Positions 27,472 through 60,653 of a DNA stretch of 64,000 bases are shown piece after piece; within the stretch, counting starts at the first letter, position 1; each line of letters opens with the position of its first letter. The position numbers were made by a program, and so were the translations under genes. Where the stretch lies: the IMG/VR virus record IMGVR_UViG_3300034101_004588, positions 146,957 through 210,956 of that record; one strand, 5' to 3'. The notes under the pieces are model-generated. The model was not told where the DNA came from. It ran no database searches and was given only the letters and a program-made list of their open reading frames with translations.

Positions 27472-27472
27472 A

Positions 27473-27871: not shown

Positions 27872-27886
27872 TTTTATTATTTAGGT

Positions 27887-29446: not shown

Positions 29447-29476
29447 ATCATATATTTATAGAAACCAGGTGGTATT

Positions 29477-29995
29477 CTAAAATACTTGCTGCAAAAACTC
29501 TGCTACTTCTTTATCTTTAATAGATTGTCCTTCATGCAGAATCTCACAAACAACCTTATACATATCAAAAGCCTTGCGTTCAAAAAACTTTGTTGCCTCT
29601 TCATATCCTAGAGTCTCAATCCAACAATTCATTTGTGGGTATTGAGGAGCAGCATGGAAGATACATCCATTATGAAAATTACCAATCCAACACAAAAGAA
29701 AGATTGCTCCTTTGACACCTTTTTCTTTAACCATGTATTCAAAGAATACAGCTCGTTCTTCTGGGTCTTTACCTACATACCGATTGAGCTTGGTAATATA
29801 AGAACCGTCTAAAAAGATAATCGAACGGCCTTTAGAAAGAACATGATCCTTTAAAACGGAAACATTATTATCATTCATATAGACCTTACGAATAGTAGGC
29901 CATTTAACATTAACCCCTCTAGAGGAAAAAATAGACGAACCTATCAAAGGTTGTCGATTCATTGACACTTTTTTATTTTGACGAAGATCTATCAT
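29477..29995 (-). CDS. hypothetical protein
   Basis: 172-aa ORF. Confidence 0.8.
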   Translation of the reverse strand: MIDLRQNKKVSMNRQPLIGSSIFSSRGVNVKWPTIRKVYMNDNNVSVLKDHVLSKGRSIIFLDGSYITKLNRYVGKDPEERAVFFEYMVKEKGVKGAIFLLCWIGNFHNGCIFHAAPQYPQMNCWIETLGYEEATKFFERKAFDMYKVVCEILHEGQSIKDKEVAEFLQQVF

Positions 29996-30036
29996 GTTTA
30001 AAATGATAGATTAAATTGGTGGGAAATACAAGAATA

Positions 30037-30216
30037 TTATTCGGTTTTATATCTTTCTTTAATCCATTTAGATTTGAATTTTAAAGTCCAGTCGATCAAG
30101 GCTCGAGGAAATCCAATATCGTAACCCACTTTTTCTGACTCATACCATTTGTGTTTATTGATCTCTTCTTTCATAGCCAAGAATTCTCGGTAAAGGCTAG
30201 TTTTTTCTATATTCAC
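30037..30216 (-). CDS. DUF4032-like small protein (59 aa; missed by the ORF track)
   Basis: GTG start; MNIEKTSLYREFLAMKEEINKHKWYESEKVGYDIGFPRALIDWTLKFKSKWIKERYKTE. Confidence 0.75.
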   Translation of the reverse strand: MNIEKTSLYREFLAMKEEINKHKWYESEKVGYDIGFPRALIDWTLKFKSKWIKERYKTE

Positions 30217-30239
30217 TCTATCTATTAATATTTATCATT

Positions 30240-30710
30240 TTAAGAGGTTATACGAAACGCAAATTCAACACCATCATTAGATTTAACTATTTTAAAACCA
30301 TTTTGTTTATAAAAAGACATTAAATTTTTATGAGATGATTTGTTTTGCCCTGAAGAAATTTCTCCCGGAGATAATGCCATAAGGGTTCCTGAGGGATATT
30401 GCATGGCTAAAGTATTAATGATCTCTGAACCCCTACCTAATCCTCTTTGTGTAGAAAGTATTCTTAATAATTGAATCCATATATAGGTAAATTTTTTTGG
30501 TAGTTTTAAAGACCTTAGATATTTTGCTACCGGATCATTTTTGGGATCATCAAAATAAAAAAGATCAATAACCTCAGATATTGTCAGGTTTTCAGCAACG
30601 TCCCAATCGAAGTCTGCTATTTTTTTACCATCTTCTCGAACTTCTTCTCGAGACATATCAAATTCTAAAGACTCTAGAATTTGTTTTATTTTATTATTGA
30701 ACCGATTCAT
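30240..30710 (-). CDS. GNAT-family acetyltransferase
   Basis: TQRGLGRGSEII acetyl-CoA loop; LMSFYKQNGF. Confidence 0.75.
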   Translation of the reverse strand: MNRFNNKIKQILESLEFDMSREEVREDGKKIADFDWDVAENLTISEVIDLFYFDDPKNDPVAKYLRSLKLPKKFTYIWIQLLRILSTQRGLGRGSEIINTLAMQYPSGTLMALSPGEISSGQNKSSHKNLMSFYKQNGFKIVKSNDGVEFAFRITS

Positions 30711-31062
30711 TTTCAAACCAATAAATCATTCCATTAGGACCTTCTTCCATTTTTAGGTCATCATGTTTGATTCCTACTTTAGAAAGAAGATTGCCTAATC
30801 TTTCTCCAGTCGCTTGAAAATCAAATAAAGAATAATCCGTATTAAAAATTTGTTTATACATTTCATCTAAATCAGAAAACTTTTCTTGGTTATCATAAAT
30901 TTTCTTCTTAGAAAAAAGACTATTGCCGAACATTTCTTTCAAACGAGAAGCAAAGGTTTCAGACAATTCATCATAAGCTTTCATCTGAACTTTTTTCTGT
31001 TCTTTGGCTTGGTTAATTTTACCGTAAGTCTCTTCTAAGAGTATTTGATCTTTATTTTTCAT
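30694..31062 (-). CDS. putative internal virion protein
   Basis: MKNKDQILLEETY. Confidence 0.8.
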   Translation of the reverse strand: MKNKDQILLEETYGKINQAKEQKKVQMKAYDELSETFASRLKEMFGNSLFSKKKIYDNQEKFSDLDEMYKQIFNTDYSLFDFQATGERLGNLLSKVGIKHDDLKMEEGPNGMIYWFENESVQ

Positions 31063-31066
31063 AAAA

Positions 31067-31318
31067 TTATTCTTTAGATTCTGTATATTTTAGATGTCTT
31101 AATATATCTTCAAAGACCTCGACTACATTATTAAAATTACCCCAATAACCTAATCCATCTTGATTCTCGGCCTCATCAATATATTCATTAAAAGCTTCCA
31201 TGACCTTATTTTTAAAACGCCAGAGTTCTTCTTCTTGAAAATCTTGTAAGGCCTGTAGTTTTGGATTTACAATTTTATCCATTTCCGCTTCCAAGAGTAT
31301 TTGATCTTTAGATCGCAT
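31067..31318 (-). CDS. putative internal virion protein
   Basis: MRSKDQILLEAEMDKIVNPKLQALQDF. Confidence 0.8.
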   Translation of the reverse strand: MRSKDQILLEAEMDKIVNPKLQALQDFQEEELWRFKNKVMEAFNEYIDEAENQDGLGYWGNFNNVVEVFEDILRHLKYTESKE

Positions 31319-38776: not shown

Positions 38777-38813
38777 TTGTTTGGTGATCAGCTTCTTGAC
38801 ATTCCGATCCAAA

Positions 38814-39038: not shown

Positions 39039-39103
39039 TCCTTTCTAATAAAATAAGTATAGAACAGTTTAAGACTTAGGCAACGAAGTATTTTTAATAA
39101 AGA

Positions 39104-39179
39104 TGGTACCTGAGGTGGGACTCGAACCCACACTTGACAGATTTTAAGTCTGTTGTCTCTGCCATTGGACTACTCAGGC
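39104..39179 (-). tRNA. tRNA-Leu(UAA), short variable loop
   Basis: ACAGA-CTTAAAA-TCTGT; variable region only CAAGT; A73; CCA. Confidence 0.92.
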
Positions 39180-40068: not shown

Positions 40069-40404
40069 TTAATCTGTATCTTTAATGAACTTCATAAGCT
40101 GTCTACCCCAATCAAAGAGGTTTTCCGGAAATTCTTTAATAGTTTTCATACTATAGTAAAGATTAAATTCTTCAGGGGTCTTTCCAGGTTTATTTTGTAA
40201 TTGTTCTAAGACGTCTTCAATCCTTTGATTAATTTCTTCTTCTTGACCTATCAAGACCTTTTCTATATCTAATATAAGCCCAAAAACCTGATTGATCTTA
40301 CGGGAGAGCTCCATTATATCTTTTTCTTTATTAGCAAATTCTTTAAAGGCATCAACCTTATTTTGCACCTGATTATAGGCTTCGGATAAACTTTTATTAT
40401 TCAT
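40069..40404 (-). CDS. putative internal virion protein
   Basis: LSEAYNQVQNKVDAFKEF. Confidence 0.8.
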   Translation of the reverse strand: MNNKSLSEAYNQVQNKVDAFKEFANKEKDIMELSRKINQVFGLILDIEKVLIGQEEEINQRIEDVLEQLQNKPGKTPEEFNLYYSMKTIKEFPENLFDWGRQLMKFIKDTD

Positions 40405-40984
40405 TGGTCCATTTATCTATCTTTCTTAACATTTCGGAGAGTTTATGAATTCCTTGGAAGTCATCTCCTAAAATACTATATTCATTTTCTGATCCCCAAT
40501 GAGCCTTACGATAGGCAGGGGGCATATGGTTTAGATTAAATCCTAGGTCTTTGGCATTAGGAGCCCATAAGAGAAATTCTACTTCATTTTTAAGTAAGCG
40601 AGCCAGGATCTCTACTATAACATAAGCCTTATAGGTTCCTTCTAAACCAAAGATATGAAAGTCTCTTTTTTGATTCATTTCAAATTTATAGTTAGTATCT
40701 TGAGGGGTAGGTTTTAAAGGATCGGTATATATCAATAAAGGTTTAGCAGTTGCTCGATTAGGAATTTCCCAGGCCCATACATCATCGAAACCGGACTCTT
40801 GAGTAATTTCATCGTTCTCGGTTATATATTTGTGGGGTCCCAATACTCTTTCTAGATCGGCAATGGAAGCTTTAATGGTCAATTCATTTTTATATTGGTC
40901 TTTAATTTCTTGTTTAAAGAAATTTTTAAAGCCTTGAGCCTTAACATTAGATAAGGTTTCTTCTACAAGTTGATTAAATTTCAT
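40397..40984 (-). CDS. putative internal virion protein, divergent FG-x-P domain
   Basis: MKFNQLVEETLSNVKAQGFKNF; LERVLGP...WAWEI. Confidence 0.85.
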   Translation of the reverse strand: MKFNQLVEETLSNVKAQGFKNFFKQEIKDQYKNELTIKASIADLERVLGPHKYITENDEITQESGFDDVWAWEIPNRATAKPLLIYTDPLKPTPQDTNYKFEMNQKRDFHIFGLEGTYKAYVIVEILARLLKNEVEFLLWAPNAKDLGFNLNHMPPAYRKAHWGSENEYSILGDDFQGIHKLSEMLRKIDKWTNE

Positions 40985-40998
40985 GGATCTATTATTTA

Positions 40999-41412
40999 TT
41001 ATTCTCCGGGTGGAAAGAGAACCTCGTCTTGTAAGGGTTGTTCTAAACGAAATTCCCAGTGATAGGTTTTCTTGCCTAAAGTTGGATTATTAGGTTCGGT
41101 GTAAAGTTCATTCTTATATCCATAGTCATTTAGAGCCTGAGATATGTTTCTTAATTCTCGCACTTTAATCTTAATACGTTGATCAACTCCTATGGCAAAG
41201 AAATCTTCATCAATCCAATCAAATTTTATATAAGAAGATAAATGAGGAACTGTTTGGTTTACTATGTTCTTTATAACTTTGCTTTCGTTATTAGATTCTT
41301 CCGCAGTTCTTTTAGAGGTGTTTTGGGAAAAACTTTTTAAAGCCTGGAGCTTATCATTCTCTAATACCGTTTGATAAACTTCTTTTAAAATTTGTAAATC
41401 CTTATCACCCAT
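40999..41412 (-). CDS. putative internal virion protein
   Basis: MGDKDLQILKEVYQTVLE-NDKLQALKSF. Confidence 0.85.
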   Translation of the reverse strand: MGDKDLQILKEVYQTVLENDKLQALKSFSQNTSKRTAEESNNESKVIKNIVNQTVPHLSSYIKFDWIDEDFFAIGVDQRIKIKVRELRNISQALNDYGYKNELYTEPNNPTLGKKTYHWEFRLEQPLQDEVLFPPGE

Positions 41413-41441
41413 TTTTATTATTTAGGGATAATAAGGATTTA

Positions 41442-41735
41442 TTATTTCCAACAAGCCTTGCCTCTTAAAATATAAGCATTACCCAAAATCGGATAACCGG
41501 CGGTGGCCGAGGCATCGGGATTGACTAAAAGCTTTTTCCATTCTCCTTCTTCATCCACTAACAATTGTAAAGGTTCTTGAGAACGATTGTTAAGGATCGG
41601 AGCCATCGTAATGTAACCCCCAACGAAGTCCTGAACCTCTTGCAGAGTGGGAGAATCTTTTTTTTCCGAGACAATACGAGTTTTAGTTCCGTTGGAGGCG
41701 GTGATATTAACCGAATAAATTTTAGGTTTTTTCAT
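41442..41735 (-). CDS. DUF3846-like protein
   Basis: TLQEVQDFVGGYI...LVDEEG...VNPDAS...ILGNA. Confidence 0.8.
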   Translation of the reverse strand: MKKPKIYSVNITASNGTKTRIVSEKKDSPTLQEVQDFVGGYITMAPILNNRSQEPLQLLVDEEGEWKKLLVNPDASATAGYPILGNAYILRGKACWK

Positions 41736-41766
41736 CCTTTAAGTCTAAAACCTTTTATTGGGAAGG

Positions 41767-41967
41767 TCACTTCAAATATACCAAAGACTGATGGGTCTCT
41801 CCTTGGTAGTTAAAGGTTAAAAGATCACGACCTTGCATATCTTCTTCAACATTGAGTACCTCCAGGTCTTCACACCTAACATATTCTCCTAAAAGAAGAA
41901 CGTGGGGTTTGGGTTCGTGGTAATAGCTCTCTTCGGTGTATTCTCCTAAAATTCTTTTTTCACTCAT
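41767..41967 (-). CDS. hypothetical protein
   Basis: 66 aa with TTCCAG-spacer promoter upstream. Confidence 0.75.
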   Translation of the reverse strand: MSEKRILGEYTEESYYHEPKPHVLLLGEYVRCEDLEVLNVEEDMQGRDLLTFNYQGETHQSLVYLK

Positions 41968-42093
41968 AATTTAAAAATTTAACTTGTTTTTTCTGGAATT
42001 GCCCGTATTATTTTATAAATATTAAAGATTAAAAGCTTTTAATTCGGTTTCTGTGGTGGAAATATAAAGGTTTTCACCAAAGAAATTAAAATT

Positions 42094-42198
42094 ATGAGTC
42101 TATTAATCGGTAGTATAATATTAACATTTAATGTTAAACTTTTTTGTTTAAGTTATTTGTTAATGGTTTCAGAAATGTTTAGTCGAGGCAATCGTTGA
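42094..42198 (+). CDS. small hydrophobic peptide (34 aa)
   Basis: MSLLIGSIILTFNVKLFCLSYLLMVSEMFSRGNR, followed by a UUCG hairpin. Confidence 0.4.
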   Translation: MSLLIGSIILTFNVKLFCLSYLLMVSEMFSRGNR

Positions 42199-42228
42199 TT
42201 GATTTGATAAAAACCTTTTTGCAATACC

Positions 42229-42262
42229 ACGGGAGAATCTTCGGATTCTCCCGTATTTGTTT
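42229..42262 (+). terminator. C(UUCG)G terminator hairpin
   Basis: ACGGGAGAATC-TTCG-GATTCTCCCGT then ATTTGTTTT. Confidence 0.75.
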
Positions 42263-42292
42263 TAAGGAAGGAAAAACCGTTAAATAGTCTAT

Positions 42293-42655
42293 ATGAAATT
42301 TAATTTATTGTGGGAATCTTATCTTAAAGGGTTAAAAAATAATTTAGAAGATTTTAAATTGTTTATCGAAAAGAGATCTACAGGAGCCAAAAAGATTGCC
42401 GAGGCTTCGGCTAAGAAGGGGGAATATGCTACACTGACCGCTATTCACTTTAAAGCCAAAGAGGTTCCTTATAACTTTTGTCTTCGCCACTACAAAGCTG
42501 AAGATTCTAAATTGGTAGAAGATAAAGCCGATGAATGTTTTACTAAATTAAAGTCTTGGAAGAAGATGTCTCAAAGAGAATTTCAGGCAGTGATGGGGGA
42601 ATTAGAGGCTTATGGAGAGGTTTATATTAGATCAAAAGAGACAAAAGGACAATAA
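42293..42655 (+). CDS. hypothetical protein
   Basis: 120 aa after TAAATA; MKFNLLWE N-terminus. Confidence 0.8.
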   Translation: MKFNLLWESYLKGLKNNLEDFKLFIEKRSTGAKKIAEASAKKGEYATLTAIHFKAKEVPYNFCLRHYKAEDSKLVEDKADECFTKLKSWKKMSQREFQAVMGELEAYGEVYIRSKETKGQ

Positions 42656-42769
42656 ACCTTTGTATTTTCTTTATTTTTAGCAATTTCTTCTATAAAATAA
42701 CTTTTATTTTGAATTTTTTATAAATTTTAAGCACTTTTTTTACAAAATAAGCCACTTTTTTATAGATTT

Positions 42770-43534
42770 TTACGATTTTTTATGCAAAAAAGCAAACGGA
42801 CATTTGCTTTTTTGAGGGGGTATTTGAGATTCTGTAATGAATTCTTTGGGGGTACGAAAGAATTTTTTATAGCGATGAAAGAAAACCGTGCAAGCCTTGT
42901 CCCATTGTTTTTTAAATTTAGACCCCTTATCATAAGAATAGAACGATACAAATTTTTGTCGCTTAAAAGGTATAACCTGAATGATAGGGGTGCCTTTAGG
43001 AATCAATCCTTCAAAGCCTTCCTTAATCAAAAAGGGAAAGTTTACCGGCATAGGAAACTTATCTGTATCAACTAATCCTGAAAAGCAAAGAAAAGGAACT
43101 TCATCGGTATGTTGTGGTTGTAAAAACAAACAAGACCAACCTCGTGGAGTTTTTATAATCCAAGGATTCTCCCATTTAAAAGCTACCTGATTGGAGTAAC
43201 CCGAAGGAATGGGATAATTACCTATTTGTTCAAAATAATGGGTATTAGCTATTTCTAATTCTGGAGCAGACCAGCGAATATCACATCCTCCTTCTCGGTA
43301 TTCAATCCAAACATCACAAGGTAAGGGAATGTAATAACCGGCACCTCTCATGTCATTGAAAGGCATACATTGTTTGACGGTCTCTAAAGGGTCTCCGTGA
43401 TGGTCTATTTTAGAATCACTCCAAAAAGTAGAAAGATTTTTAAACCATTGTGGAGTTAATTGAGAAGCTGGATAAGGTTTATCACAAATTTCTAAATACT
43501 TTTTCTCCTTTGCAATAAACTTAATTGGTATCAT
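42770..43534 (-). CDS. phage hypothetical protein of a family common in aquatic phages
   Basis: TVKQCMPFND...FKWENPWIIKTPRGWSCLF...GLVDTD...IPKGTPIIQVIPFKR. Confidence 0.85.
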   Translation of the reverse strand: MIPIKFIAKEKKYLEICDKPYPASQLTPQWFKNLSTFWSDSKIDHHGDPLETVKQCMPFNDMRGAGYYIPLPCDVWIEYREGGCDIRWSAPELEIANTHYFEQIGNYPIPSGYSNQVAFKWENPWIIKTPRGWSCLFLQPQHTDEVPFLCFSGLVDTDKFPMPVNFPFLIKEGFEGLIPKGTPIIQVIPFKRQKFVSFYSYDKGSKFKKQWDKACTVFFHRYKKFFRTPKEFITESQIPPQKSKCPFAFLHKKS

Positions 43535-43579
43535 ACTTTAATAATAAAGCATGTTTTAAGGTTATCAAATAAAATTTAA

Positions 43580-44143
43580 TTAAGACCTTGATATACTCAA
43601 TATTTGTGCCTGAGGTATGAGTTTTTCTATTTTAATCTTGGTTCTAGCTCTTTGCTCTTTTTCATCTTCTTCTGATTTTATCCACATCGGCCAAGGTTTA
43701 AGAGTACCAAAGTGAATATAGAATTTTTTTGGTGATGTTATTGTTTTAAAATAATTTAATACCCCTTCTTCGGATTCAAATTGAAAAGGAGGTATTTTAG
43801 ACGAAGTATATATAGATCCTAAAGAATTATCTTCAAGTTCAAAATACCAAGAAACTGTGATAACGGTAGAAACTATATTTTTATTTTTGCTATCAAAAAG
43901 TCGAGTGTGATGTACATCATAAAAAGTAACATCTGTTTCACTAGGATCTCCGAGACTCTCAAAAACATTTTTTGGAATTACTTCAATAGTACTTTTCATT
44001 TGAGGGTTTATCTCAAACTCATCTCTAGTAAATTTACGTTTAATCCTGGTGTAAGAAAAAAAAGATTGTAAACCTCTCAACTTATCATTTTCATTGATAG
44101 AATGGTAAGTTTTTAATAAAGATTGTAGGTCTTTGTTATTCAT
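43580..44143 (-). CDS. putative internal virion protein
   Basis: SINE-NDKLRGLQSF; SLGDP...W. Confidence 0.85.
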   Translation of the reverse strand: MNNKDLQSLLKTYHSINENDKLRGLQSFFSYTRIKRKFTRDEFEINPQMKSTIEVIPKNVFESLGDPSETDVTFYDVHHTRLFDSKNKNIVSTVITVSWYFELEDNSLGSIYTSSKIPPFQFESEEGVLNYFKTITSPKKFYIHFGTLKPWPMWIKSEEDEKEQRARTKIKIEKLIPQAQILSISRS

Positions 44144-44793
44144 CCGTGTATTAGTCTTCTAAACATACCAGCATATTCATCTAAATAATCTGGCAATAAT
44201 TCTAAATTCATGGCATTTTCAAATTCTTTTAATTCTTGTGGAGTCAATGTTCCTTCATTATAACCTGGAGATAAATTTTCAATAGCACTGTTCATATTTG
44301 AGACCATTTCTTGTTGATGTTTTTTTAATATTTTATAATTTTTATCTAAATGCTTTTGCATGTTTTTAACATCCTCTGCAAATTGTGATATTTCTTTATT
44401 GTTTTGTGCAAAGCTTTTTAATCCTTCAAGTTTATTATTTTCTTCTATTGTACCTTCTAAAGTTTTTTTAAGTTCTTCTGCTGCGTCTTCTAAAACTCTT
44501 ACAAAGCCATAAATGTTATCTGCATTAGATTTAGCATCTTTTGAAGCTTCAATTTCATTTTTTAATACTCCACGAAGCCAGGCCATATATTCTTTCTCTT
44601 GAAAGTCATCATCATAAAGTTCAGAAAGAAAATCATCGAATTTATGAAAGAAATCTACAATTCTGTTTTGAATGTATCGTGTTCTTTGTTCGAAATTTTC
44701 TTGTTTACTAAAACTTTTGAGTGCCTGAAGTTTATCATTTTCATTAATCATTTGATAAGCTTTACCTAGAGATTGTAGATCTTTATCTTTCAT
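44140..44793 (-). CDS. putative two-module internal virion polyprotein
   Basis: MINE-NDKLQALKSF and internal TIEE-NNKLEGLKSF. Confidence 0.85.
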   Translation of the reverse strand: MKDKDLQSLGKAYQMINENDKLQALKSFSKQENFEQRTRYIQNRIVDFFHKFDDFLSELYDDDFQEKEYMAWLRGVLKNEIEASKDAKSNADNIYGFVRVLEDAAEELKKTLEGTIEENNKLEGLKSFAQNNKEISQFAEDVKNMQKHLDKNYKILKKHQQEMVSNMNSAIENLSPGYNEGTLTPQELKEFENAMNLELLPDYLDEYAGMFRRLIHG

Positions 44794-44803
44794 TTTTATT
44801 TAC

Positions 44804-45322
44804 TTAACGGGTTTTTTGTTTATTTTTAAAAACAATTCTATCAATACGTTCTTGTATGTCTTTTGCTATCTCGCCAAGTTCTTTGTTTTGTATAGAAGGA
44901 TCGGTTGCTCCTTTATATCTAAAATATACTCTATAACTTATATCACGATAATCATCTCGATAATCTTCGTCTTCATCGCGAGGCAATATAAACTTTTTTG
45001 CTAGGTAATGTTCCAACCAAAAAGGATCTATGTGGTTTGTGCTTATAGCCATTTTTACATTATCTGCAAATTCAATATACCAAGATATTGTTCCATATTT
45101 CCAATCAAGACCACGGTGATATTCATAATGTGAAATTTCATTTGGAGGGCCAAATATATCTGCTATTCGAGTTACATCGTGATGAAAATTTTCAACAAAA
45201 TAAGAATCTTTATATTTTTTAGGATTAAATGTACCTTTGACCTGAAAACGCAAAACGTCATAGGTATAAAAATCTTTAAATCCTTTTAATTTTTTAGCTG
45301 CTCTATTATCTTGATTTTCCAT
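44804..45322 (-). CDS. FG-x-P/W-x-I-x-F domain protein
   Basis: KKLKGFKDF; IFGPP...WYIEFADN. Confidence 0.85.
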   Translation of the reverse strand: MENQDNRAAKKLKGFKDFYTYDVLRFQVKGTFNPKKYKDSYFVENFHHDVTRIADIFGPPNEISHYEYHRGLDWKYGTISWYIEFADNVKMAISTNHIDPFWLEHYLAKKFILPRDEDEDYRDDYRDISYRVYFRYKGATDPSIQNKELGEIAKDIQERIDRIVFKNKQKTR

Positions 45323-46173
45323 TACAGTTTTAAAAGCGTTTGTAATCGGCTTACAACGTCTTGATACTTATTTGCTGGAGAAACTCCAACCCACCAATCT
45401 GTAGGTTCATCTTCTAAAAGATCAAAGTTGTTGCGGGTTAAGTCTTCATCGTCGTCATGTTCTTTGGTGACAAATCCATACATATGAACAAAGGCTCCAT
45501 CATTAAATTCTATATACCAATCAGCCTTAGCTTGATCGGTATCAAAGTAAGCGTCAATATCTCCTTGATAGTCTAAAGAATTAGGAGTCGGATTTATATC
45601 TGACATCTTATCCATCATATCTTCATAACTTACTCCCCCAATAAAAAATTCGGTAGGGCTCATGTCATCTTTTGCTTCTAAGGCTCTTTCTTTCCATTCT
45701 TTATAACTTAAAAATTGAAAGTTTTGAGACATTTTAAAAGATTTTAAACCTTCTAATTTACTTTCTGATATCTGTTCCGGCAATGTTTGTTCTAGATGTT
45801 CACTATAATCTTTAGATATTTTCTCTGGACCAATAACAAACCATTCCAAGATTTCATTTTCTAGCATTTGATCTACCGACAAAGCTAATACAGAGGCGAT
45901 ATAAATTTTTCCTCCGTTGGTAAAGGTTATTTCCCAAGCAATTTTAGTATCTCCTCCTTTAGTTTTATCTATTGAAGGTTCTACTCCTTTAAGATAATTT
46001 TTTAAAATAGGATAGGTAGCAGTAAATTCAAAAACTCCTTCTTTTATTGAAGGGTCTTTAAGAACCAAATCCCATAGATTTACTGGTTTAACTTTCTCTA
46101 TATCAAATCTATTAGCAAAAGACTTTAAAGCGTCTAACTTATTATTTTCTTTTAGATATTGCTTAAAGTTCAT
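45322..46173 (-). CDS. putative two-module internal virion polyprotein
   Basis: MNFKQYLKE-NNKLDALKSF; QISE-SKLEGLKSF; WEITFTNG and WYIEFNDG. Confidence 0.85.
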   Translation of the reverse strand: MNFKQYLKENNKLDALKSFANRFDIEKVKPVNLWDLVLKDPSIKEGVFEFTATYPILKNYLKGVEPSIDKTKGGDTKIAWEITFTNGGKIYIASVLALSVDQMLENEILEWFVIGPEKISKDYSEHLEQTLPEQISESKLEGLKSFKMSQNFQFLSYKEWKERALEAKDDMSPTEFFIGGVSYEDMMDKMSDINPTPNSLDYQGDIDAYFDTDQAKADWYIEFNDGAFVHMYGFVTKEHDDDEDLTRNNFDLLEDEPTDWWVGVSPANKYQDVVSRLQTLLKL

Positions 46174-48326
46174 ATTATGTTTAGAGGTATATTATTTATA
46201 TTAAATTTTTCTGTGACCTCTTCTCTTTTTTTATTAGACCAAACATCAAAAGAATAATTTTGATCGTAATCTATATTTGAACCTTTGGCGTGAGTTTTAA
46301 AAATAGCAATTAAGGTCCCGTCTCCAAATATTATTCCCCACCCTGTATTAAATCTATAGTCCATGCGAAAGTGGGGATAATGAAACACTGTACCTAATCT
46401 TTTTTCTAATTGGGGGTAGGAACTATTGATTTGAAAGGCAAAATATTTATATATTTCCGGAGCCAATCTATCCGGATTAACTATTTCTATAATTTTATTA
46501 CTTTTTTGAAAAGCTTTTAATCCTTCTAGTTTATTACTTTCCTCTTGCACATACACTTCTGAATTTGGAAACATAGAGGATATTCTATTTTTTAAATCTG
46601 GTTTACTTGTTGTTTTTGCTTTCGATTTTTTTGATGGAATATAAACATACCATCTTTCATTTGCAGTTTCTAAATCATAATTAAAATGGTTTTGTCTTTG
46701 CTGTGTATTTTTTAAATAATCCATCATATTACTATTGAGACCTGGTGTAATTATACATTTTAAACCGTCTTTAAATGTAAATGCCCATAATACATATTCA
46801 AATAAAGATTGAGAACTAGTATCCCATTTCCAAGGATCGAAATTGCCTGCAGGAAGATTAAGTTTTTGTGGTTCTCCAAATTTGTTTTTAACTTCTTTTA
46901 AATTAGATACAAAAGATCCCAAACACTCAAATCCCGCATCAGAAAAGTTTGGGTCTTTAGAAATTTCAAATTGTTGAGTATCTAAAAATTGTTTAAATCC
47001 TAATATTTTATTATTTTCTTTTATAATTTGTTTGTTGAGAATGGTTTTTATTCTTTCAACTACATCTAAAGCATTTTGTTCATCCTGATCATTAGCTACA
47101 TAAACATCCCAAGGATGATCTTCATCCGGATCTAATTCTCCAAACATTTCCATAGCATCTTCATTGGTTAATCCTTGTAAAATAACTTTATTACCATCAC
47201 CAAACTCTATACCCCAATTGTAAATAATTGTGTCACCGTTACGAGGATTGACATCTCTTTCAATTCGCGGTTCTCCAAATTTAGATTTTAGATTGTTTAT
47301 CGAAGCATAAAAGTCATCTGTCGGATCTGCGTGCACGTAATTATCAAACCTGTATTCATTATTAATATTTTTTTCCCAATTTTTAAGAGTTTGTTGGTCT
47401 ATTGATCTGAATTGCAATTTACTAAAAAAACTTTTTAAATTTATTAATTTATTATTTTCTTCTATATTTCTTCTAGTCCAAGGCACAACATCTAAATTTA
47501 TTTTTGTTTGTCCTAATATAAATTTAAGACGATCTGATAAATCTTCTTTTTCTTCTGCCCCTTCATAAGTTCCATAAACAGTCCATTTGTCGCTAAAATA
47601 AACAGTTATATCTGCTTTAGAAACCGATCCTGTCTTTAAATAACGATCGGTTACATCTTTTGGAATATAGTTACTGGTGATATACATTGCCTTGCCATCA
47701 GCAAAAGTAATAACCCACATAAAAGCTGAATAAGTGGTATTTGGTAAAGTTTCTACAAAAGGTTTACCAAACAATTGAACTATTTCATTATAATTTTTAA
47801 AAAACTGTCCCATCATTGTAAGATTAGTTTTAGGTAAATCTTTTAAACCCGAGAGTTTAATTATTTTATAACGATTATAAAAATTTTTAAATCCTTGTAA
47901 TTTATTTTCTTTTAAAAGTTTACCACCCTTTTCTTTTATAGCTTGTTTTATTCTTGCAATGTAATCTTTTGGATTCATACCAGATACCGTCCAATAAGTT
48001 ATTTGTTCTAGATTTTTCTTTGCGTTTATGCCAAAAGGTTTTATTTCTTTTAAAGCAGATACAGAAGCCTTTGCTCCGTCTTTAAAAGTAACCAACCATA
48101 TCCAATCTGTTTCATCAAACCCTATTTTTTTTTCTTTTGGAGGTTTACCAAAAGTTTTTAATAAAGCATCATAAGAAACATGAAATCCTTCTACTCTATT
48201 TTCTTGAGAAGGATACATTGGTTGTAAAAAATCACTATATTCTTCCGGTGAATAATCATTTGAAACAAATGCTATTCCGTGAGAAGCTGAAAAATCTTTT
48301 AAAGCTTTTAATTTAAAATTATTCAT
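46170..48326 (-). CDS. five-module putative polyprotein
   Basis: five FG-x-P...W-x-x-x-F-x-DG domains separated by E-N/S-(N)K-L-x-x-(L/F)-K-x-F linkers. Confidence 0.9.
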   Translation of the reverse strand: MNNFKLKALKDFSASHGIAFVSNDYSPEEYSDFLQPMYPSQENRVEGFHVSYDALLKTFGKPPKEKKIGFDETDWIWLVTFKDGAKASVSALKEIKPFGINAKKNLEQITYWTVSGMNPKDYIARIKQAIKEKGGKLLKENKLQGFKNFYNRYKIIKLSGLKDLPKTNLTMMGQFFKNYNEIVQLFGKPFVETLPNTTYSAFMWVITFADGKAMYITSNYIPKDVTDRYLKTGSVSKADITVYFSDKWTVYGTYEGAEEKEDLSDRLKFILGQTKINLDVVPWTRRNIEENNKLINLKSFFSKLQFRSIDQQTLKNWEKNINNEYRFDNYVHADPTDDFYASINNLKSKFGEPRIERDVNPRNGDTIIYNWGIEFGDGNKVILQGLTNEDAMEMFGELDPDEDHPWDVYVANDQDEQNALDVVERIKTILNKQIIKENNKILGFKQFLDTQQFEISKDPNFSDAGFECLGSFVSNLKEVKNKFGEPQKLNLPAGNFDPWKWDTSSQSLFEYVLWAFTFKDGLKCIITPGLNSNMMDYLKNTQQRQNHFNYDLETANERWYVYIPSKKSKAKTTSKPDLKNRISSMFPNSEVYVQEESNKLEGLKAFQKSNKIIEIVNPDRLAPEIYKYFAFQINSSYPQLEKRLGTVFHYPHFRMDYRFNTGWGIIFGDGTLIAIFKTHAKGSNIDYDQNYSFDVWSNKKREEVTEKFNINNIPLNII

Positions 48327-48625
48327 ATACCTTCAAAAAATCCGTTTCTTTCTAAAAAACTATTTAAAATTTCTTTAGCTCTTTCTCTTTCTCCATACCA
48401 ATGTACACCATATAGCTCATTTTCTGGATCATGAATTGTATTATGTACGAATTGCCATAACACCTGCCAATGACTAGATCCTTGAATGACTGTTCTTAAA
48501 TTTAATTGTTCTGGTATATGTTCTCTCATGAAGTCTAAAATCTTTTCATCCAATTCTGAATGTCTGGAAAAAGATTTTAATGCAGACAATTTATTATTTT
48601 CTTTTATATATTTTTTAAAATTCAT
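48323..48625 (-). CDS. putative internal virion protein
   Basis: MNFKKYIKE-NNKLSALKSF. Confidence 0.85.
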   Translation of the reverse strand: MNFKKYIKENNKLSALKSFSRHSELDEKILDFMREHIPEQLNLRTVIQGSSHWQVLWQFVHNTIHDPENELYGVHWYGERERAKEILNSFLERNGFFEGI

Positions 48626-48628
48626 TGG

Positions 48629-49057
48629 TTATCTTTTATTTAATAAATGATCTAATCGTTCTAAAATTTCTTGTTCTCTTCCTATTGGACCAGTTACTTG
48701 TGCTATAACTGGGCTGTCTGGAATAACATTATTTTCCTCATCATAATGCAAATCATGAACTTCAGTACTTAATATAACTTTAACACCATCGTTAAATTCA
48801 ATCCCCCATTCTAAAAATTTTGCTCTACCTGGTCCTTCGTCTGTGAAATCGGGTTCTCCAAATAAATCTATCAAACTATCATATCTATCTACAACCATTT
48901 CTGTCATATAATAATCCATGCCCAACTTTTCTATATCTTTTACTGACATAGAAAAATAAGGTTTTGCATCAAATCTTTTTTTTACCATATATGCTCCTGC
49001 AAATTGTTTAAATGCTTCTAATTTATTTTCTGTATAATATTTTAAAAAAGTTTTCAT
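48629..49057 (-). CDS. FG-x-P/W-x-I-x-F-x-DG domain protein
   Basis: YYTE-NKLEAFKQF; LFGEP...WGIEFNDG. Confidence 0.85.
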   Translation of the reverse strand: MKTFLKYYTENKLEAFKQFAGAYMVKKRFDAKPYFSMSVKDIEKLGMDYYMTEMVVDRYDSLIDLFGEPDFTDEGPGRAKFLEWGIEFNDGVKVILSTEVHDLHYDEENNVIPDSPVIAQVTGPIGREQEILERLDHLLNKR

Positions 49058-49434
49058 GTTAATATATTAGTTAATCTTTCAATCACTTCTTTTGATTTAT
49101 TTTCTGGAGCAGATACACTATAAGCATAAAATTCATCTCCTCTCGACAAATATCTTAACACGGATAATGTATTATCTCCAAATTCTATAATCCAGAGAGG
49201 ACCCATCATGCCGTAAGCTCCGGTTATTGGTTCTCCTAAAAGTTTTTTAACATCTTTATAAGGAGGAGCTTTAGGAAAAACAATTGTTTTATAATTAGCT
49301 AATATATTAGGATCTGCTAATTCGGGATATATTCTGTTAATATCCGCTCGAGTTCTCATCCCTTCTTTGTTTGCTGCTATAATTTGATTGGCTTTAACAA
49401 ATTGTTGAAAACTTTTTAATTTATTTTTATCCAT
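49054..49434 (-). CDS. FG-x-P/W-x-I-x-F domain protein
   Basis: MDKNKLKSFQQF; LLGEP...WIIEFGDN. Confidence 0.8.
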   Translation of the reverse strand: MDKNKLKSFQQFVKANQIIAANKEGMRTRADINRIYPELADPNILANYKTIVFPKAPPYKDVKKLLGEPITGAYGMMGPLWIIEFGDNTLSVLRYLSRGDEFYAYSVSAPENKSKEVIERLTNILT

Positions 49435-50233
49435 GACGTAAAAAATATTCTCTGTCTGCATCAAATTCTTTACGTTCGTAATTAAAATTTGCTATCATAT
49501 CTTTAAAAGGTATGAATATTTCATCACCTTCTTCTGCTTTACGAAATGCTTGTCTGGGTTCTATTTTGCTCCAAAGCATATGAAGACCGGTAGGTTTAAC
49601 TTCTAATATTTCCCCAGTAACACTATACTGATCTGCAACTACTTCTCCGTATTGAGCATAGCTAAAACGTTTACGACCATATATAGTTAAATCCAAATCA
49701 ACAGCGTCTTTAAAAAGATTGTAAAGATCGTAAGAATTTACTAATCGTGAAGAATATTGTAAATTATCATATTTTCGAATTATGTCTCGTCTCTTTTCAT
49801 CACTAACAAAAGATTTTAAACCTTCTAGTTTATTGTTTTCGGATATTTGTTTTAATCCTAATTTATTTAAAATTGTGTTTAAAATATCTTCAGCGTCTTT
49901 ATAAGCATTAACAATTATAGATATGCCTTTATCTTGTTCGTTTGTTAAAAAAACTAAACGAGAAGGTGTTCCTCCCATTTTAAAATCCCAAATATAAGAT
50001 TTATAGTCTCTTGGAATTTTTTTTGAAACCCAAGATCCTCCATGTCCAAATAAATCAGCCAATTGACTTGGATAAATTGTTCGGTCTTTTGGTATTTTAT
50101 AACCAGCTACGGTTTCATTTTGAACCGAAGGATAAGAAGTTTTGAAGTCTCCTGAAGGAATGTATTCAATTTGATTAAACGATTTTAAAGCTTTTAATTT
50201 ATCATTTTCTAATAGATATTGCTTAAAGTTCAC
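49427..50233 (-). CDS. putative two-module internal virion polyprotein
   Basis: MNFKQYLLE-NDKLKALKSF; QISE-NNKLEGLKSF. Confidence 0.85.
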   Translation of the reverse strand: MNFKQYLLENDKLKALKSFNQIEYIPSGDFKTSYPSVQNETVAGYKIPKDRTIYPSQLADLFGHGGSWVSKKIPRDYKSYIWDFKMGGTPSRLVFLTNEQDKGISIIVNAYKDAEDILNTILNKLGLKQISENNKLEGLKSFVSDEKRRDIIRKYDNLQYSSRLVNSYDLYNLFKDAVDLDLTIYGRKRFSYAQYGEVVADQYSVTGEILEVKPTGLHMLWSKIEPRQAFRKAEEGDEIFIPFKDMIANFNYERKEFDADREYFLRHG

Positions 50234-50241
50234 ATTTCTAT

Positions 50242-50628
50242 TTATTCTTTGATCTCCGGAGTCATCGCATATATATTATAAAGATACAAGACATATTCTT
50301 TAAATTGATCTTGTAAAGAATAAATTGTTAGTTCTTCGAAAGGGTTTGTAGGTTGCATTTCTAAAATACCTTGCAAAGATTCTATAAAAGATAGCATTAT
50401 AGAATCATATCTTTTTGGTCCTATTAATTCTTTTTGTTCTTTGGTGACCATTGATTCATAAGACAAATAGGATTTGACTTGTTCTTGATCTATTTTACCA
50501 TCTTTAACAATATCAATGGGTTTGTTTTCGATAAAAGATTTTAAAGCTTGAACTTTTGGTTCTATTTGTTCTTGAAACACTTTGTCTTCTTTAACAAAGT
50601 CTTTAAAAGCTTTAAACTTTTTTAACAT
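50242..50628 (-). CDS. putative internal virion protein
   Basis: KKFKAFKDF and QIE-PKVQALKSF. Confidence 0.8.
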   Translation of the reverse strand: MLKKFKAFKDFVKEDKVFQEQIEPKVQALKSFIENKPIDIVKDGKIDQEQVKSYLSYESMVTKEQKELIGPKRYDSIMLSFIESLQGILEMQPTNPFEELTIYSLQDQFKEYVLYLYNIYAMTPEIKE

Positions 50629-58742: not shown

Positions 58743-60653
58743 ATGGCAACAGACATTTTCCCAACTAGTAATATGCAACCCGATCAAGGTAGAGGGTTTA
58801 TCAACTCTATATTATCTCGTTTGCCTTATGTTAAAAATACAGTAGAAACTGGAACCAACAATCCTCGTTATGAATTGTTTGATCGCTTGAGCAAAAGACA
58901 AGAATATAGAGTATTACAGCAATCTGTTATTACTGGACCATTTTTAACACAAAATAATGATATCTATAACCCAAATACATTTGCTTCAGATCAAGGTTAT
59001 CATCGCTATATTTATGCTAATATAGATAGCGATAAAATTAGAAGATTAGCTGAGTATCGACGTATAGCAGCATTTGCAGAGGTTAGTGATTGTTTGGATG
59101 AAATATGTGATGAATTTATTAGTAAAGATGATGAAGGCAAAATAATTAAATTGTCTTTTAACGGTTTTGAAAAATTAAATCCAGAAGAAAGAAAAGAAAT
59201 AGAAAAAGAATTTTATAAATTTATTAACATTTTTGATTTGCCGGACAAGGGATGGGGATATTGTCGCCAAATGCTCACAGAAGGGGAAATATTTTTTGAA
59301 AATGTTGTTTCAGAAAGAAAAGAAGATTTGGGAGTTATAGGTGTTCTAAATGTACCAGGAGAACTTATTAATCCAATATATGATAACGTGCAAAACAATG
59401 TTATACAAAATTTTGTTTTTCAAAAACCTATCAATCTTTTACAACAACAAAACCAACAACCACAGACTCAAAAAGACGGTCAATATCCTAATATACCGTC
59501 AACACCTAATCCAATTAATAATAATTTAACCCCTAATAACGTTTTACAACATCAAGTTGTAACATTACAAGGCAATCAGGTAACCTATATTAATTCTGGT
59601 TTATGGAACGAAGACATGACTATTCGTATTCCGTTTATTGAAAATTGTCGTCGAGCTTATAAGCAATTGTCTTTATTAGAAGATGCTATTGTCATTTATC
59701 GTTTAGTTAGAGCTCCCGAAAGATTAAAATTTGTTATTGATGTCGGTAATATGCCTCCAGCCAAAGCAGAAGCTTATATTCGTCAATTGATGCAAAAATA
59801 TTGGACAAAAAAGACTTATGACACTCAAAGTGGTGGAGCCGCTGGAAACATTTATGATCCACAGTCTATGTTAGATTCTTTTTGGTTCGCTAAAAGAGCC
59901 GGAGAACAAGGATCTAATGTTGAAGTGTTACAAGGAGGACAAAATTTAGGACAATTAGATGATTTAAATTATTTTGTTCTTAAATTATATAAGAGCTTAA
60001 AAGTACCTACTACTCGTTTAAATCCTAATGAATCCTTTAAAGATGGTTCAGAAATATTAAGAGAAGAACTAAGATTTGCTAAATTTATTATTAGATTACA
60101 AAATCAATTTGCTCAAGGATTGAAAAATTCTTTTGTTACACATCTTAAATTAAGAGGTTGGTGGAAACAATATAAATTACACGAATCTTATTTTGATTTA
60201 TCTTTTAATCCTCCATCTAATTTCTTTGCAATAAGACAACAAAATCTTTTTGAATTAAAGTATAAAAACTTTAATGATATGAGCGGTAATGATGGTATAT
60301 CTAATACGTTTGCTCAGCGACATTATTTGGGACTGAATGATGCTAAGATCAGTGAGAACATGGAATGGAAACGCAAAGATGCAGCTTTAAATTGGGAATT
60401 ACAACAAATACAATCACTAGGACCTAATTGGAGAGAACAATTAGAGGTTGCCGAAACTGCCATGAAAGCTGGTGGATTAGGAGCAGGTAAAGAATCACCT
60501 ATTGGAGGTGGAGGATCTAGTAGTCCCACAGAAATACCAGAATTTGGAGGAGGGGAAACACCTCCAGCAGAAGAAGCTCCAGCTGCTCTAGAGACAACAC
60601 CAGAAACAGAAACAAGTCCCGCTCTAGAAGCAACTCCAGAAACACCGGTTTAA
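58743..60653 (+). CDS. gp20: portal vertex protein (T4 gp20 family)
   Basis: LEDAIVIYRLVRAPERLKFVIDVGNMP..KAEAY; QGGQNLGQLDDLNYF..KLYKSLKVP..RL; EILREELRFAKFI. Confidence 0.95.
   Translation: MATDIFPTSNMQPDQGRGFINSILSRLPYVKNTVETGTNNPRYELFDRLSKRQEYRVLQQSVITGPFLTQNNDIYNPNTFASDQGYHRYIYANIDSDKIRRLAEYRRIAAFAEVSDCLDEICDEFISKDDEGKIIKLSFNGFEKLNPEERKEIEKEFYKFINIFDLPDKGWGYCRQMLTEGEIFFENVVSERKEDLGVIGVLNVPGELINPIYDNVQNNVIQNFVFQKPINLLQQQNQQPQTQKDGQYPNIPSTPNPINNNLTPNNVLQHQVVTLQGNQVTYINSGLWNEDMTIRIPFIENCRRAYKQLSLLEDAIVIYRLVRAPERLKFVIDVGNMPPAKAEAYIRQLMQKYWTKKTYDTQSGGAAGNIYDPQSMLDSFWFAKRAGEQGSNVEVLQGGQNLGQLDDLNYFVLKLYKSLKVPTTRLNPNESFKDGSEILREELRFAKFIIRLQNQFAQGLKNSFVTHLKLRGWWKQYKLHESYFDLSFNPPSNFFAIRQQNLFELKYKNFNDMSGNDGISNTFAQRHYLGLNDAKISENMEWKRKDAALNWELQQIQSLGPNWREQLEVAETAMKAGGLGAGKESPIGGGGSSSPTEIPEFGGGETPPAEEAPAALETTPETETSPALEATPETPV

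Follow-up and report, generated by a model that had tools for sequence, protein, structure and literature searches.

A leader-and-helix tag on diverse proteins of a T4-related phage: candidate head cargo

A T4-related phage of 211 kb, known only from freshwater metagenomes, carries two clusters with about 22 fast-evolving genes whose products are tagged with a short leader ending in (L/I/V)-x-E, a short amphipathic helix, or both. The reading that we favour, on sequence grounds and with a probability of roughly 0.45, is that these genes encode head cargo like the internal proteins (IPs) of T4, made partly as polyproteins and keeping a docking helix after cleavage. Coordinates refer to the window, the 64,000-nucleotide stretch of this genome that was analysed; arrows mark cleavage sites, which are predicted in this phage.

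The tagged genes and their layout

In the first cluster (40069-50628), where the initial annotation had reported the motif, all 13 minus-strand genes carry it or a degenerate form. The single-module 142-aa member (48629..49057) begins MKTFLKYYTE↓NKLEAFKQF and continues with a core domain that recurs in the family, whereas in the 100-aa member (48323..48625) MNFKKYIKE↓NNKLSALKSF heads a body unrelated to it. The 187-aa (43580..44143), 137-aa (40999..41412) and 111-aa (40069..40404) proteins begin MNNKDLQSLLKTYHSINE↓NDKLRGLQSF, MGDKDLQILKEVYQTVLE↓NDKLQALKSF and MNNKSLSE↓AYNQVQNKVDAFKEF, the last with a helical body. Two-module members are the 268-aa protein (49427..50233, GTG start, ATAAATA box 5 nt upstream), which starts MNFKQYLLE↓NDKLKALKSF and has the junction LKQISE↓NNKLEGLKSF at residue 135; the 283-aa protein (45322..46173, box 20 nt upstream), with MNFKQYLKE↓NNKLDALKSF and EQISE↓SKLEGLKSF at 139; and the 217-aa protein (44140..44793), with an 18-residue leader (MKDKDLQSLGKAYQMINE↓NDKLQALKSF), GTIEE↓NNKLEGLKSF at 121 and two helical-looking bodies distinct from the core domain. 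The five-module, 718-aa member (46170..48326), by its sequence a candidate polyprotein, has the leaderless start MNNFKLKALKDF and carries the motif five times, of which four mark internal junctions: LLKE↓NKLQGFKNF (142), NIEE↓NNKLINLKSF (293), IIKE↓NNKILGFKQF (440) and VQEE↓SNKLEGLKAF (599). A leaderless member of about 126 aa (49054..49434) reads MDKNKLKSFQQF from the ATG at 49434, the automatic ORF call running on to a TTG at 49464; its body is the core domain, as is that of the 172-aa member (44804..45322), whose helix lies at residue 11 (MENQDNRAAKKLKGFKDF) without an (L/I)xE. Degenerate forms are found in the 128-aa member (50242..50628; copies MLKKFKAFKDF at residue 4 and KVQALKSF at residue 25, no clear (L/I)xE), in the 195-aa member (40397..40984; MKFNQLVEETLSNVKAQGFKNF, ATAAATA box 8 nt upstream) and in a probable 120-aa member on the opposite, plus strand (42293..42655; MKFNLLWESYLKGLKNNLEDFKLF), recognised by eye from the MKFN... 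leaders of 40397-40984 and L011.

Scanning for the motif revealed a larger family than had been noted, with a second minus-strand cluster at 25735-31318 where the helix is as in the first and the leader is different (MxxKDQILLE). Its tagged genes lie at 31067-31318 (MRSKDQILLE↓AEMDKIVNPKLQALQDF), 28788-29129, 28300-28788 (MKYKDQILLE↓AQYDKIQAFKQF), 27887-28303 (MNKKDLQLLRE↓ATDKILALKKF), 27473-27871 (MKTKDQILLE↓SQYDKIQGLKKF) and 27025-27471 (SLLE↓ADLNKVQALRSF, followed by the core domain). The gene at 30694-31062 has the leader only, as does the one for a 425-aa protein (25735..27012; MRTKDQILLE↓Q...). This protein has 20 homologues, of which the closest three alone share the leader, and in its structure model the leader has a pLDDT below 50. 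Untagged genes stand between the tagged ones of this cluster (27025..31318). Outside both clusters, a 254-aa gene (16010..16774, minus strand) carries the leader MKNKDHILLE↓R.

The initial annotation had placed the motif at gene starts and described leader and helix as a pair. The first point applies to the N-terminal copies, but seven copies lie within proteins, where modules meet (four in the 718-aa ORF and one each in the 283-, 268- and 217-aa ORFs), which moves the picture towards polyproteins or a domain-linked helix. The pairing is seen in many members; others have the helix without (L/I)xE or the leader without the helix, and the two elements are thus separable.

Conservation of the helix at the protein level

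The helix motif, K-(L/I)-x-(A/G)-(L/F)-(K/Q)-x-F, has about 27 copies in minus-strand coding frames. A six-frame search of the window with this expression gave 30 matches; composition-preserving shuffles gave 2.6 +/- 1.6 and never more than 7. On average, pairs of copies are 58% identical across the 8-residue motif and 7% across the following 30 residues. The helix is short and amphipathic: positions +1, +4 and +7 are hydrophobic, +3 is occupied by a small residue, and 0 and +5 each hold a near-invariant Lys. A strict pattern, E-N-[ND]-K-L-x-[AG]-[LF]-K-x-F, was back-translated to DNA and searched in IMG/VR and a metagenome collection. Among 2.9 million IMG/VR contigs it matched seven times, in this phage alone and always inside the 40069-50628 cluster. 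The metagenome collection yielded 31 matches that look like chance, because each is a singleton, about half are interrupted by in-frame stops and none has a leader or a second copy.

The copies occupy gene starts and the joints between modules, places of evident shuffling, as could also be expected of a DNA- or RNA-level element that drags the peptide along, be it a recombination joint, a promoter, a ribosome-binding site or a structured RNA; GAAAATAATAAATTA is A/T-rich, with a loose likeness to ATAAATA boxes. However, inside the motif constant amino acids are written with freely varying synonymous codons: Leu is encoded by TTA, CTA, CTT, TTG and CTC, Ser by TCT, AGT, AGC, TCG and TCC, and Ala by four codons, which indicates that selection acts on the protein. 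Moreover, every true copy is in frame and on one strand, and the motif is kept in relatives although their DNA has diverged. Codon variation effectively refutes conservation at the DNA or RNA level, and we give this explanation hardly any weight.

A T4-like leader, its predicted cleavage site and the head genes

The initial annotation had taken T4 as its frame of reference, and the genome bears this out. A T4-kind gp20 portal gene (58743..60653, plus strand; PF07230) has 27% identity with cyanophage portals. Some 15 kb past the right end of the window lie genes for gp13, a Peptidase_S77 prohead protease, a gp22-like scaffold and a T4-type gp23 capsid protein (28% identity), the last three at about 14-17 kb (L004 14509-17836). 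The protease shares 34% identity with T4 gp21, and its GELNHP and GVSSR blocks align; its N-terminus, HLLVE, resembles LLIE-9 of gp21; the capsid protein has a plausible candidate maturation site, I-E-E↓A. The T4 facts that had been quoted on the leader, gp21 cleavage and the internal proteins are found in the literature (PMC3012670; PMC9026906).

By sequence, the leaders MKTFLKYYTE, MNFKQYLKE, MKTKDQILLE and MNKKDLQLLRE resemble the T4 propeptides taken from NC_000866, namely MKTYQEFIAE↓A of IPII and IPIII, MKTFKEF...ITE↓A of IPI and MAKINELLRE↓S of gp24, the last being close to the second-cluster leader MNKKDLQLLRE↓A. Their length, 9-18 residues, compares with 10-19 in T4 (PMC9026906). As with the CTS of IPI, IPII and IPIII, a short N-terminal leader ending in (L/I)-x-E heads otherwise unrelated proteins; the internal proteins of T-even phages are diverse and have the CTS as their only common part (PMC3012670). 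There are also differences. At P1', most predicted sites would have Asn, Ser or Asp, and those of the second cluster Ala, Ser, Glu or Gln, whereas the verified T4 IP sites that were compared all have Ala, and the compared IP and gp24 sites together Ala or Ser; P3 is aromatic or Thr in some leaders (YYTE, FFTE, YYE). T4 IPs have neither the additional conserved helix that follows the site here nor repeated tags within multi-module proteins, and they number 3 against about 22 tagged genes here. The gp21 substrates gp24, gp23, gp67, gp68 and gp21 itself have conserved structural or scaffold bodies, in contrast to the small, diverse and lineage-specific ones of this phage.

At the internal junctions of this phage and two relatives, [LIVM]-x-E stands 1-3 residues ahead of the helix in 15 of 16 copies, where the per-residue background is 2%, and the MNFKQY portion of the leader is not retained. 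This mirrors T4 genetics, in which targeting depends on residues 4 and 7 and processing on residues 8 and 10 (PMC9026906). If the genes fused only recently, common descent alone could explain the retention of L-x-E and helix at internal junctions. The N-terminal copies lie 1-9 residues after the x-E site or, in leaderless genes, at most 5 residues from Met, so that the helix would always end near a free N-terminus. This position, and the separability of the helix, agree with the earlier proposal that it survives cleavage as the new N-terminus. In the AF2 model of the 142-aa member (pLDDT 83), residues 8-11 (YTEN) are coil and a helix begins at K12, so the putative scissile bond E10↓N11 is predicted within a 4-residue coil flanked by two helices.

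A short amphipathic helix that is portable over unrelated bodies might instead give different proteins one cellular address away from the capsid, such as a membrane or, as a handle, a chaperone or protease of the host or the phage; being rich in K, L and F, it is presumably comparable to MinD- or FtsA-type membrane-targeting sequences. We consider this improbable: internal copies fit a terminal membrane anchor poorly unless cleaved, inspection of the sequences by eye found no transmembrane or secretion features, and the coupled x-E site and T4-like leaders would be left unexplained.

Module bodies and the head-cargo reading

The proteins had been called otherwise divergent, which is true of only part of them. 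Between 9 and about 14 module bodies share one uncharacterised core domain of about 100 aa, and BLASTP interlinks 8 bodies; the rest show no relation by BLAST or HMM. The core domain has over 100 distant homologues without the tag, which match only profile positions ~36-125. Since the tag heads non-homologous bodies and is absent from these homologues, it is a portable add-on and not part of the fold. Comparison of the bodies with T4 IPs and known virion proteins found no homology, and many members are acidic (pI 4.5-5.3) where T4 IPI-III are basic (8.9-9.5).

These features, together with evident tandem duplication, could describe an ordinary paralogous family acting outside the virion, as cytoplasmic host-takeover or anti-defence proteins. 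The helix would then be the first element of a lineage-specific N-terminal extension spread by tandem duplication and fusion, and L-x-E, which is helix-friendly, would be kept by descent and uncut. In relatives, orthologues differ in modules (5 vs 3; 1 vs 2), fusions and fissions show junctions to descend from gene starts, and the model places the helix beside the core domain with moderate confidence (pLDDT ~80), where it might merely pack on the domain. Sigma70-type promoters directly upstream of the clusters would likewise suit early genes, but this point is neutral because T4 ip genes also carry early-type promoters. Late-promoter-like ATAAATA boxes precede four family genes and are not conserved in relatives. 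The tagged-gene locus adjoins a tRNA cluster; T4 ip genes similarly combine a tRNA-cluster neighbourhood, sigma70-type promoters and a variable locus. Against a non-virion family, the tag sits on bodies without detectable similarity, leader and helix are found independently, junctions keep exactly P3 and P1 whereas identity has fallen to 7% in the bodies and the remainder of the leader, and leaders like the T4 CTS and gp24 propeptides occur in the same genome as a matching protease. We judge it rather unlikely, though the most credible of the alternatives.

Head cargo has a further parallel in giant phages. According to the part of PMC5694885 drawn on here, phiKZ, 201phi2-1 and SPN3US have paralogous ejection or inner-body families processed by a T4-related prohead protease, with conserved N-termini on diverged paralogues as in this phage; the first 15 residues of SPN3US gp53 and gp54 are identical. 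The gp21-like protease cuts after Glu and the host receives the ejected cargo, steps that are proposed here, but the cleavage motif is A/S/G-x-E and propeptides often exceed 100 residues, unlike here; a retained post-cleavage helix motif and polyprotein junctions are not described in that part (PMC5694885). The giant-phage families have no sequence relationship to the tagged genes. Short elements that dock varied proteins inside an HK97-fold shell include encapsulin cargo-loading peptides and the helix-turn-helix with which P22 scaffolding protein binds coat, making contact through basic residues of an amphipathic helix. These elements are C-terminal, uncoupled from a protease site and of separate lineages, and serve as an analogy only.

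In the head-cargo reading, the genes would form an enlarged, quickly changing cargo set with a two-part N-terminal address. The leader, as counterpart of the T4 CTS and gp24 propeptide, would take each protein into the scaffolding core and then be removed by the gp21-type (S77) protease. The amphipathic helix, an N-cap (N/D/S) followed by K-L-x-(A/G)-(L/F)-K-x-F, would remain on the mature protein. It had been suggested as a possible separate signal for ejection, docking or sorting. T4 precedent speaks by analogy against the need for a separate one for ejection, as the 10-residue CTS by itself suffices for foreign proteins to be packaged and delivered (PMC9026906), and we do not favour an ejection role. 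Our best guess is a docking or co-assembly element, which might bind cargo to the acidic scaffold or capsid interior, or join paralogues into an internal body. The 718-, 283-, 268- and 217-aa proteins would be polyproteins; as their junctions retain the processing residues and helix only, the protease would free one helix-headed module per junction. We infer packaging, cleavage after Glu, a helix partner, injection and any role against host defences. The cargo bodies, comprising a diversified alpha/beta domain of about 100 aa and unrelated small domains, would be delivered with the DNA and probably bind or inhibit host factors.

Architecture of the tagged genes

The protein family is encoded in two clusters, cluster 1 (40069-50628) and cluster 2 (25735-31318), and its members share a tag made of a leader ending in (L/I)-x-E, a predicted cut site (indicated by ↓) and a helix of the form K-(L/I)-x-(A/G)-(L/F)-(K/Q)-x-F. 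As the initial annotation had claimed, the motif runs through the whole of cluster 1, where 13 of 13 minus-strand genes carry it or a degenerate form; a degenerate member on the plus strand (42293-42655) was read by eye. The helix pattern matched 30 times in the six frames of the window, against 2.6 ± 1.6 times in composition-preserving shuffles. A strict back-translated pattern returned seven matches from 2.9 million IMG/VR contigs, all in cluster 1 of this genome, and 31 singleton matches from a much larger metagenome collection. The latter look like chance, since about half contain in-frame stops and none has a leader or a second copy. Relatives of the phage keep both clusters, tag included. 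Pairwise identity among the copies is 58% in the eight-residue core versus 7% over the next 30 residues. Within the motif, Ser is encoded by TCT, AGT, AGC, TCG and TCC, Leu by five codons and Ala by four, and this synonymous variation indicates that the constraint acts on the peptide and not on the DNA. The idea that the repeat is a DNA-level element is ruled out by the same variation and receives almost no weight. A beta-clamp/PIP-box reading of Q-A-L-K-S-F was also discarded by eye, as the spacing is wrong and the Q is not conserved.

The motif had been placed at gene starts, which holds for the N-terminal copies but not for seven further copies that are internal. The 718-aa ORF at 46170-48326 contains five tagged modules, and ORFs of 283, 268 and 217 aa contain two each. 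In cluster 2 the same helix follows another type of leader, as in MKTKDQILLE↓SQYDKIQGLKKF. The two parts of the tag can occur apart: some genes start with the helix only (MNNFKLKALKDF, MDKNKLKSFQQF, MENQDNRAAKKLKGFKDF and MLKKFKAFKDF), about five family members are without any leader, and others have the leader only (25735-27012 and 30694-31062, plus 16010-16774 outside the clusters). The leader-like pattern was found in 14/27 cases in the clusters versus 13/73 elsewhere (p = 0.002). Outside the clusters, leaders resembling the capsid-targeting sequence (CTS) of T4 begin the 254-aa product of 16010-16774 on the minus strand (MKNKDHILLE↓R) and a 379-aa product encoded at 9290-10429 on the plus strand (MNLKETILE↓A); neither gene had a Pfam match, and both may encode additional head cargo. 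A 158-aa ORF of cluster 2 (30240-30716, minus strand) has a leader-like N-terminus (..NNKIKQILE↓S) and a stretch, QRGLGRGSEI, similar by eye to motif A, the acetyl-CoA-binding motif of GNAT acetyltransferases; the Pfam search was empty.

The surroundings of the helix were compared in a table that covered 59 copies, those of this phage and of two relatives (contigs L010 and L011). [LIVM]-x-E lies 1-9 residues from the helix in 27 of 42 N-terminal copies and 1-3 residues before it in 15 of 16 true internal copies, against a background of 2% per residue. In the exceptions P3 is Y, F or T, or the leader is missing altogether. The residue at P1' is usually N, S or D in cluster 1; in cluster 2 it is usually A or S. 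The N-terminal copies are located 1-9 residues after the x-E site or at most five residues from the Met; given cleavage, the helix would adjoin a free N-terminus in every case. The internal junctions are without the MNFKQY part of the leader, and what survives there are only the positions that govern processing in T4. The main alternative, a family of non-virion paralogues with a conserved N-terminal helix, is somewhat unlikely. The pattern at the junctions, where the processing positions are kept and the helix would be near the N-terminus, is what most favours processing. In the structural model of a 142-aa family protein, residues 8-11 (YTEN) form a coil that is followed by the helix from K12 onwards, which would put the predicted scissile bond between two helices. 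The N, D or S before the K would be a typical helix N-cap. The number of modules varies between orthologues (five versus three), and the orthologue of the 142-aa protein is a 277-aa two-module fusion whose junction retains FYTSLTE↓NNKL.

Module bodies and the shared core domain

The description of the proteins as otherwise divergent stood only in part. BLASTP of the bodies with the motif removed linked only 8 + 2 of them and left the others as singletons, but an alignment of 16 modules revealed a shared core with the consensus Y..L...FG.P, about 15 residues, W.I.F.DG....I, then W.V and a C-terminal helix. A broad and uncharacterised family of phage proteins of ~100 aa has the consensus Y..LV..FG.P ... 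W.I.F.DG..ATIY ... W.VGG. A profile search with this core domain against 1.84 billion representatives yielded 184 matches at E below 1e-3, which comprise about 25 close relatives that carry the tag and more than 100 proteins of ~95-125 aa without it, matched at profile positions ~36-125 only. In the reverse direction, an HMM built from the tag-less distant members only recognised nine modules of the window (E 4e-32 to 5e-5). Because tag-less homologues exist and the remaining bodies are unlinked, the tag is a lineage-specific addition placed before the core domain and before unrelated bodies.

Similarity searches gave few hints of function. Neither Pfam nor PHROGs has a family for the core domain; family members returned nothing from Pfam, from PHROGs or by tblastn on 50,697 phage records, and no module showed homology to a T4 internal protein (IP). 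No homologues of the cluster 2 paralogue at 27473-27871 were found in a word-indexed search. The confident AF2 model of the 142-aa module (pLDDT 83) had no significant match in a PDB fold search, the best being an adaptin appendage (TM 0.45), and its two marginal matches in BFVD (E ~7e-4, TM ~0.49) are unnamed viral proteins that are uninformative on function. A 425-aa leader-only protein has 20 homologues and a model of pLDDT 83, with no PDB fold match. The sole PDB sequence hint for the core domain is a weak similarity (E = 0.002) of its 'sy..lv..fGeP' element to 3d4e, a 'putative beta-lactamase inhibitor protein'.

Head genes of the phage and comparison with T4 internal proteins

The window is the final 64 kb of the 210,956-bp JGI contig IMGVR_UViG_3300034101_004588; a second assembly of the same genome, an ENA contig of 211,133 bp, has different ends. 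The genome is large and low in GC (~30%), and it carries ribonucleotide reductase, a tmRNA (15538-15996, minus strand, 135 bits) and at least 24 tRNA genes (208-14898 and 37260-39179). No nucleotide match to the window was found among 50,697 phage records. A gp20-type portal of the T4 kind is encoded at 58743-60653 (PF07230 Portal_T4; 27% identity to cyanophage portals), and a virion protein at 21231-22817 shares 59-63% identity with a cyanophage structural protein (S-RIM12 and S-RIM8). Four more T4-type head genes, for gp13, an S77 protease, a gp22-like scaffold and gp23, are located on the same contig 10-20 kb past the right end of the window. In L004, the stretch that continues the window, the protease gene occupies 14509-15180 and the scaffold gene 15423-16310. 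Pfam matches on the 211-kb contig were PF03420 Peptidase_S77, PF07068 Gp23, PF26809 gp13 and PF07230 Portal_T4, with PF25623 T4_CASP as a weak one. In BLASTP, the protease is 34% identical to the T4 prohead protease gp21 (E = 4e-19), the alignment including the GELNHP and GVSSR blocks, and the capsid protein is 28% identical to T4 gp23 (E = 3e-43). An I-E-E↓A site is plausible before the conserved mature N-terminal region of the capsid protein, and the N-terminus of the protease (...HLLVE) resembles LLIE-9 of T4 gp21.

The T4 gene order is broken in this phage. The portal is followed by Ig-like/fibre-like proteins (58743-64000 of the window and the first 12000 nt beyond it), of 112, 214 and 389 aa with repeated NELEGLTRT.N units and then of 993 aa, and the genes for gp13, protease, scaffold and gp23 come ~14-17 kb further on, where an ORF for a TnsA-like endonuclease separates gp13 from the protease. 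Directly upstream of the portal, a 1540-aa protein without PHROG family (54089-58711, plus strand) has a weak VWA-domain match at residues 813-902. Other annotated genes encode a Fringe-like glycosyltransferase (5317-5940), a dCMP deaminase (5937-6389), an HNH endonuclease (6359-6949) and a DUF932 protein (7980-9038). In a related phage contig, L045, a homologue of ribosomal protein S21 (PF01165; 7628-7813, minus strand) adjoins the cluster 2 copy.

The role attributed to T4 leaders in the initial annotation, capsid targeting and removal by gp21, is borne out by the literature: propeptides of 10-19 residues direct the IPs to the core and are cut off by gp21, targeting depends mainly on residues 4 and 7 and processing on residues 8 and 10, foreign proteins are packaged and delivered with the CTS alone, and the CTS is the sole part shared by the diverse IPs of T-even phages (PMC9026906, PMC3012670). 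IPIII works in the host cytoplasm, permitting infection of one E. coli strain. The T4 N-termini read from NC_000866 are MKTYQEFIAE↓ARVGAGKLE↓A (IPII), MKTYQEFIAE↓A (IPIII), MKTFKEFTSTTTPVSTITE↓A (IPI) and MAKINELLRE↓S (gp24). In length and pattern they resemble the leaders MKTFLKYYTE, MNFKQYLKE, MNFKKYIKE, MKTKDQILLE, MNKKDLQLLRE and the 18-residue MNNKDLQSLLKTYHSINE, which are of the CTS-like propeptide type (M-K-T-[YF]-x-E-F-x-x-E, ~10-19 residues), mostly with the gp21 site (L/I)-x-E at their end. The same genome also encodes a protease of the gp21 family, together with scaffold, capsid and portal proteins of T4 type. The T4 genes ipI, ipII and ipIII flank the tRNA cluster of T4, and the motif clusters likewise flank tRNA-Asn, tRNA-Lys and tRNA-Leu; in contrast, T4 IPs are basic and many family members are acidic. 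The ejection paralogues of the phiKZ/SPN3US type differ by a cleavage motif (A/S/G)-x-E and propeptides of more than 100 residues (PMC5694885), whereas here P3 is L, I, V or M and the leaders have 9-18 residues.

Transcription signals and interpretation of the family

The heptamer ATAAATA is a good candidate for the late promoter of this phage. It lies 5-20 nt upstream of the family genes starting at 50233, 46173, 40984 and 29446, 6-15 nt before the fibre genes and those for protease, scaffold and gp13, and 3-40 nt before 12 ORFs of the window that start with ATG (0.8 expected); beyond the right end of the window it precedes 8 of 14 structural genes, protease, scaffold and gp13 included. The 8-mer TATAAATA showed no overall enrichment, unlike the strong upstream placement of the 7-mer. 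ATAAATA is absent at the orthologous family genes of relatives L010 and L011 and, not being conserved, was not taken as evidence for late expression. Sigma70-like promoters head the clusters, and since T4 ipI-III are also headed by such promoters, the promoter evidence is neutral; a generic sigma70 scan found no excess over chance in this A/T-rich DNA. A strong 11-bp hairpin between convergent/adjacent genes, ACGGGAGAATC-TTCG-GATTCTCCCGT (42229-42254), divides cluster 1 into two units and is probably a bidirectional terminator.

Between the clusters, a GC-rich island (31600-38500; 41-55% in 300-nt windows, averaging ~45% versus ~30% elsewhere) seemed non-coding at first sight. It is a run of short minus-strand ORFs of roughly 70-125 aa, of which 6-9 are each preceded by a conserved element of 45-54 nt, TTG(A/T)GTTTCCCCC(G/A)AATAACCCCTACACTAGTATTTGTT-ATG on the minus strand, with a sigma70-like arrangement (-35, 17 nt, -10). 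This pattern has six matches against none expected, and genes of relative L011 are headed by the same promoter type. The island resembles a cassette of early genes with a foreign base composition. For this gap, an alternative genetic code and read-through of stop codons were both rejected: the three stops occur at equal frequency in every frame, and the gap consists of short genes that have a repeated promoter of their own.

The most likely reading, with a probability of about 0.45, is that the family forms a greatly expanded set of head cargo of the T4 IP kind, with a two-part tag and with some members made as polyproteins. Since T4 manages without a separate ejection signal, the retained helix would more probably serve docking or co-assembly than ejection. 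A helix for docking outside the capsid or for membrane binding is improbable, and explanations beyond those listed receive a similarly small share. A more specific form of the head cargo reading, a two-part capsid address code combined with a polyprotein strategy, is unlikely as a whole. In that scheme, a CTS-like leader would be cleaved off and a docking helix common to all cargo would resist cleavage; the prohead protease would cut proteins of up to five modules at the helix-marked junctions into separate cargo units; and the common helix would allow some twenty cargo species to co-assemble into an organised internal body or to dock on the scaffold. Neither a second docking helix nor a polyprotein cargo strategy has been defined in T4.

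Even without packaging, the family defines a new portable N-terminal peptide and a new, widespread phage domain of ~100 aa outside Pfam and PHROGs, and it is a clear example of rapid module shuffling. If the reading as head cargo is true, the repeated cleavage junctions of the multi-module proteins would represent polyprotein-style production of phage internal proteins, of which we know of no earlier case. The phage would devote ~15 kb of its genome to some twenty injected proteins versus the three of T4, a rich and unexplored set of 'first-minute' effectors whose targets are probably host defences. In the retained helix the phage would have a second signal for sorting or docking, separable from the leader; such a signal could account for the organisation of diverse cargo within a T4-type head and, like the T4 CTS, could be borrowed for loading foreign proteins.
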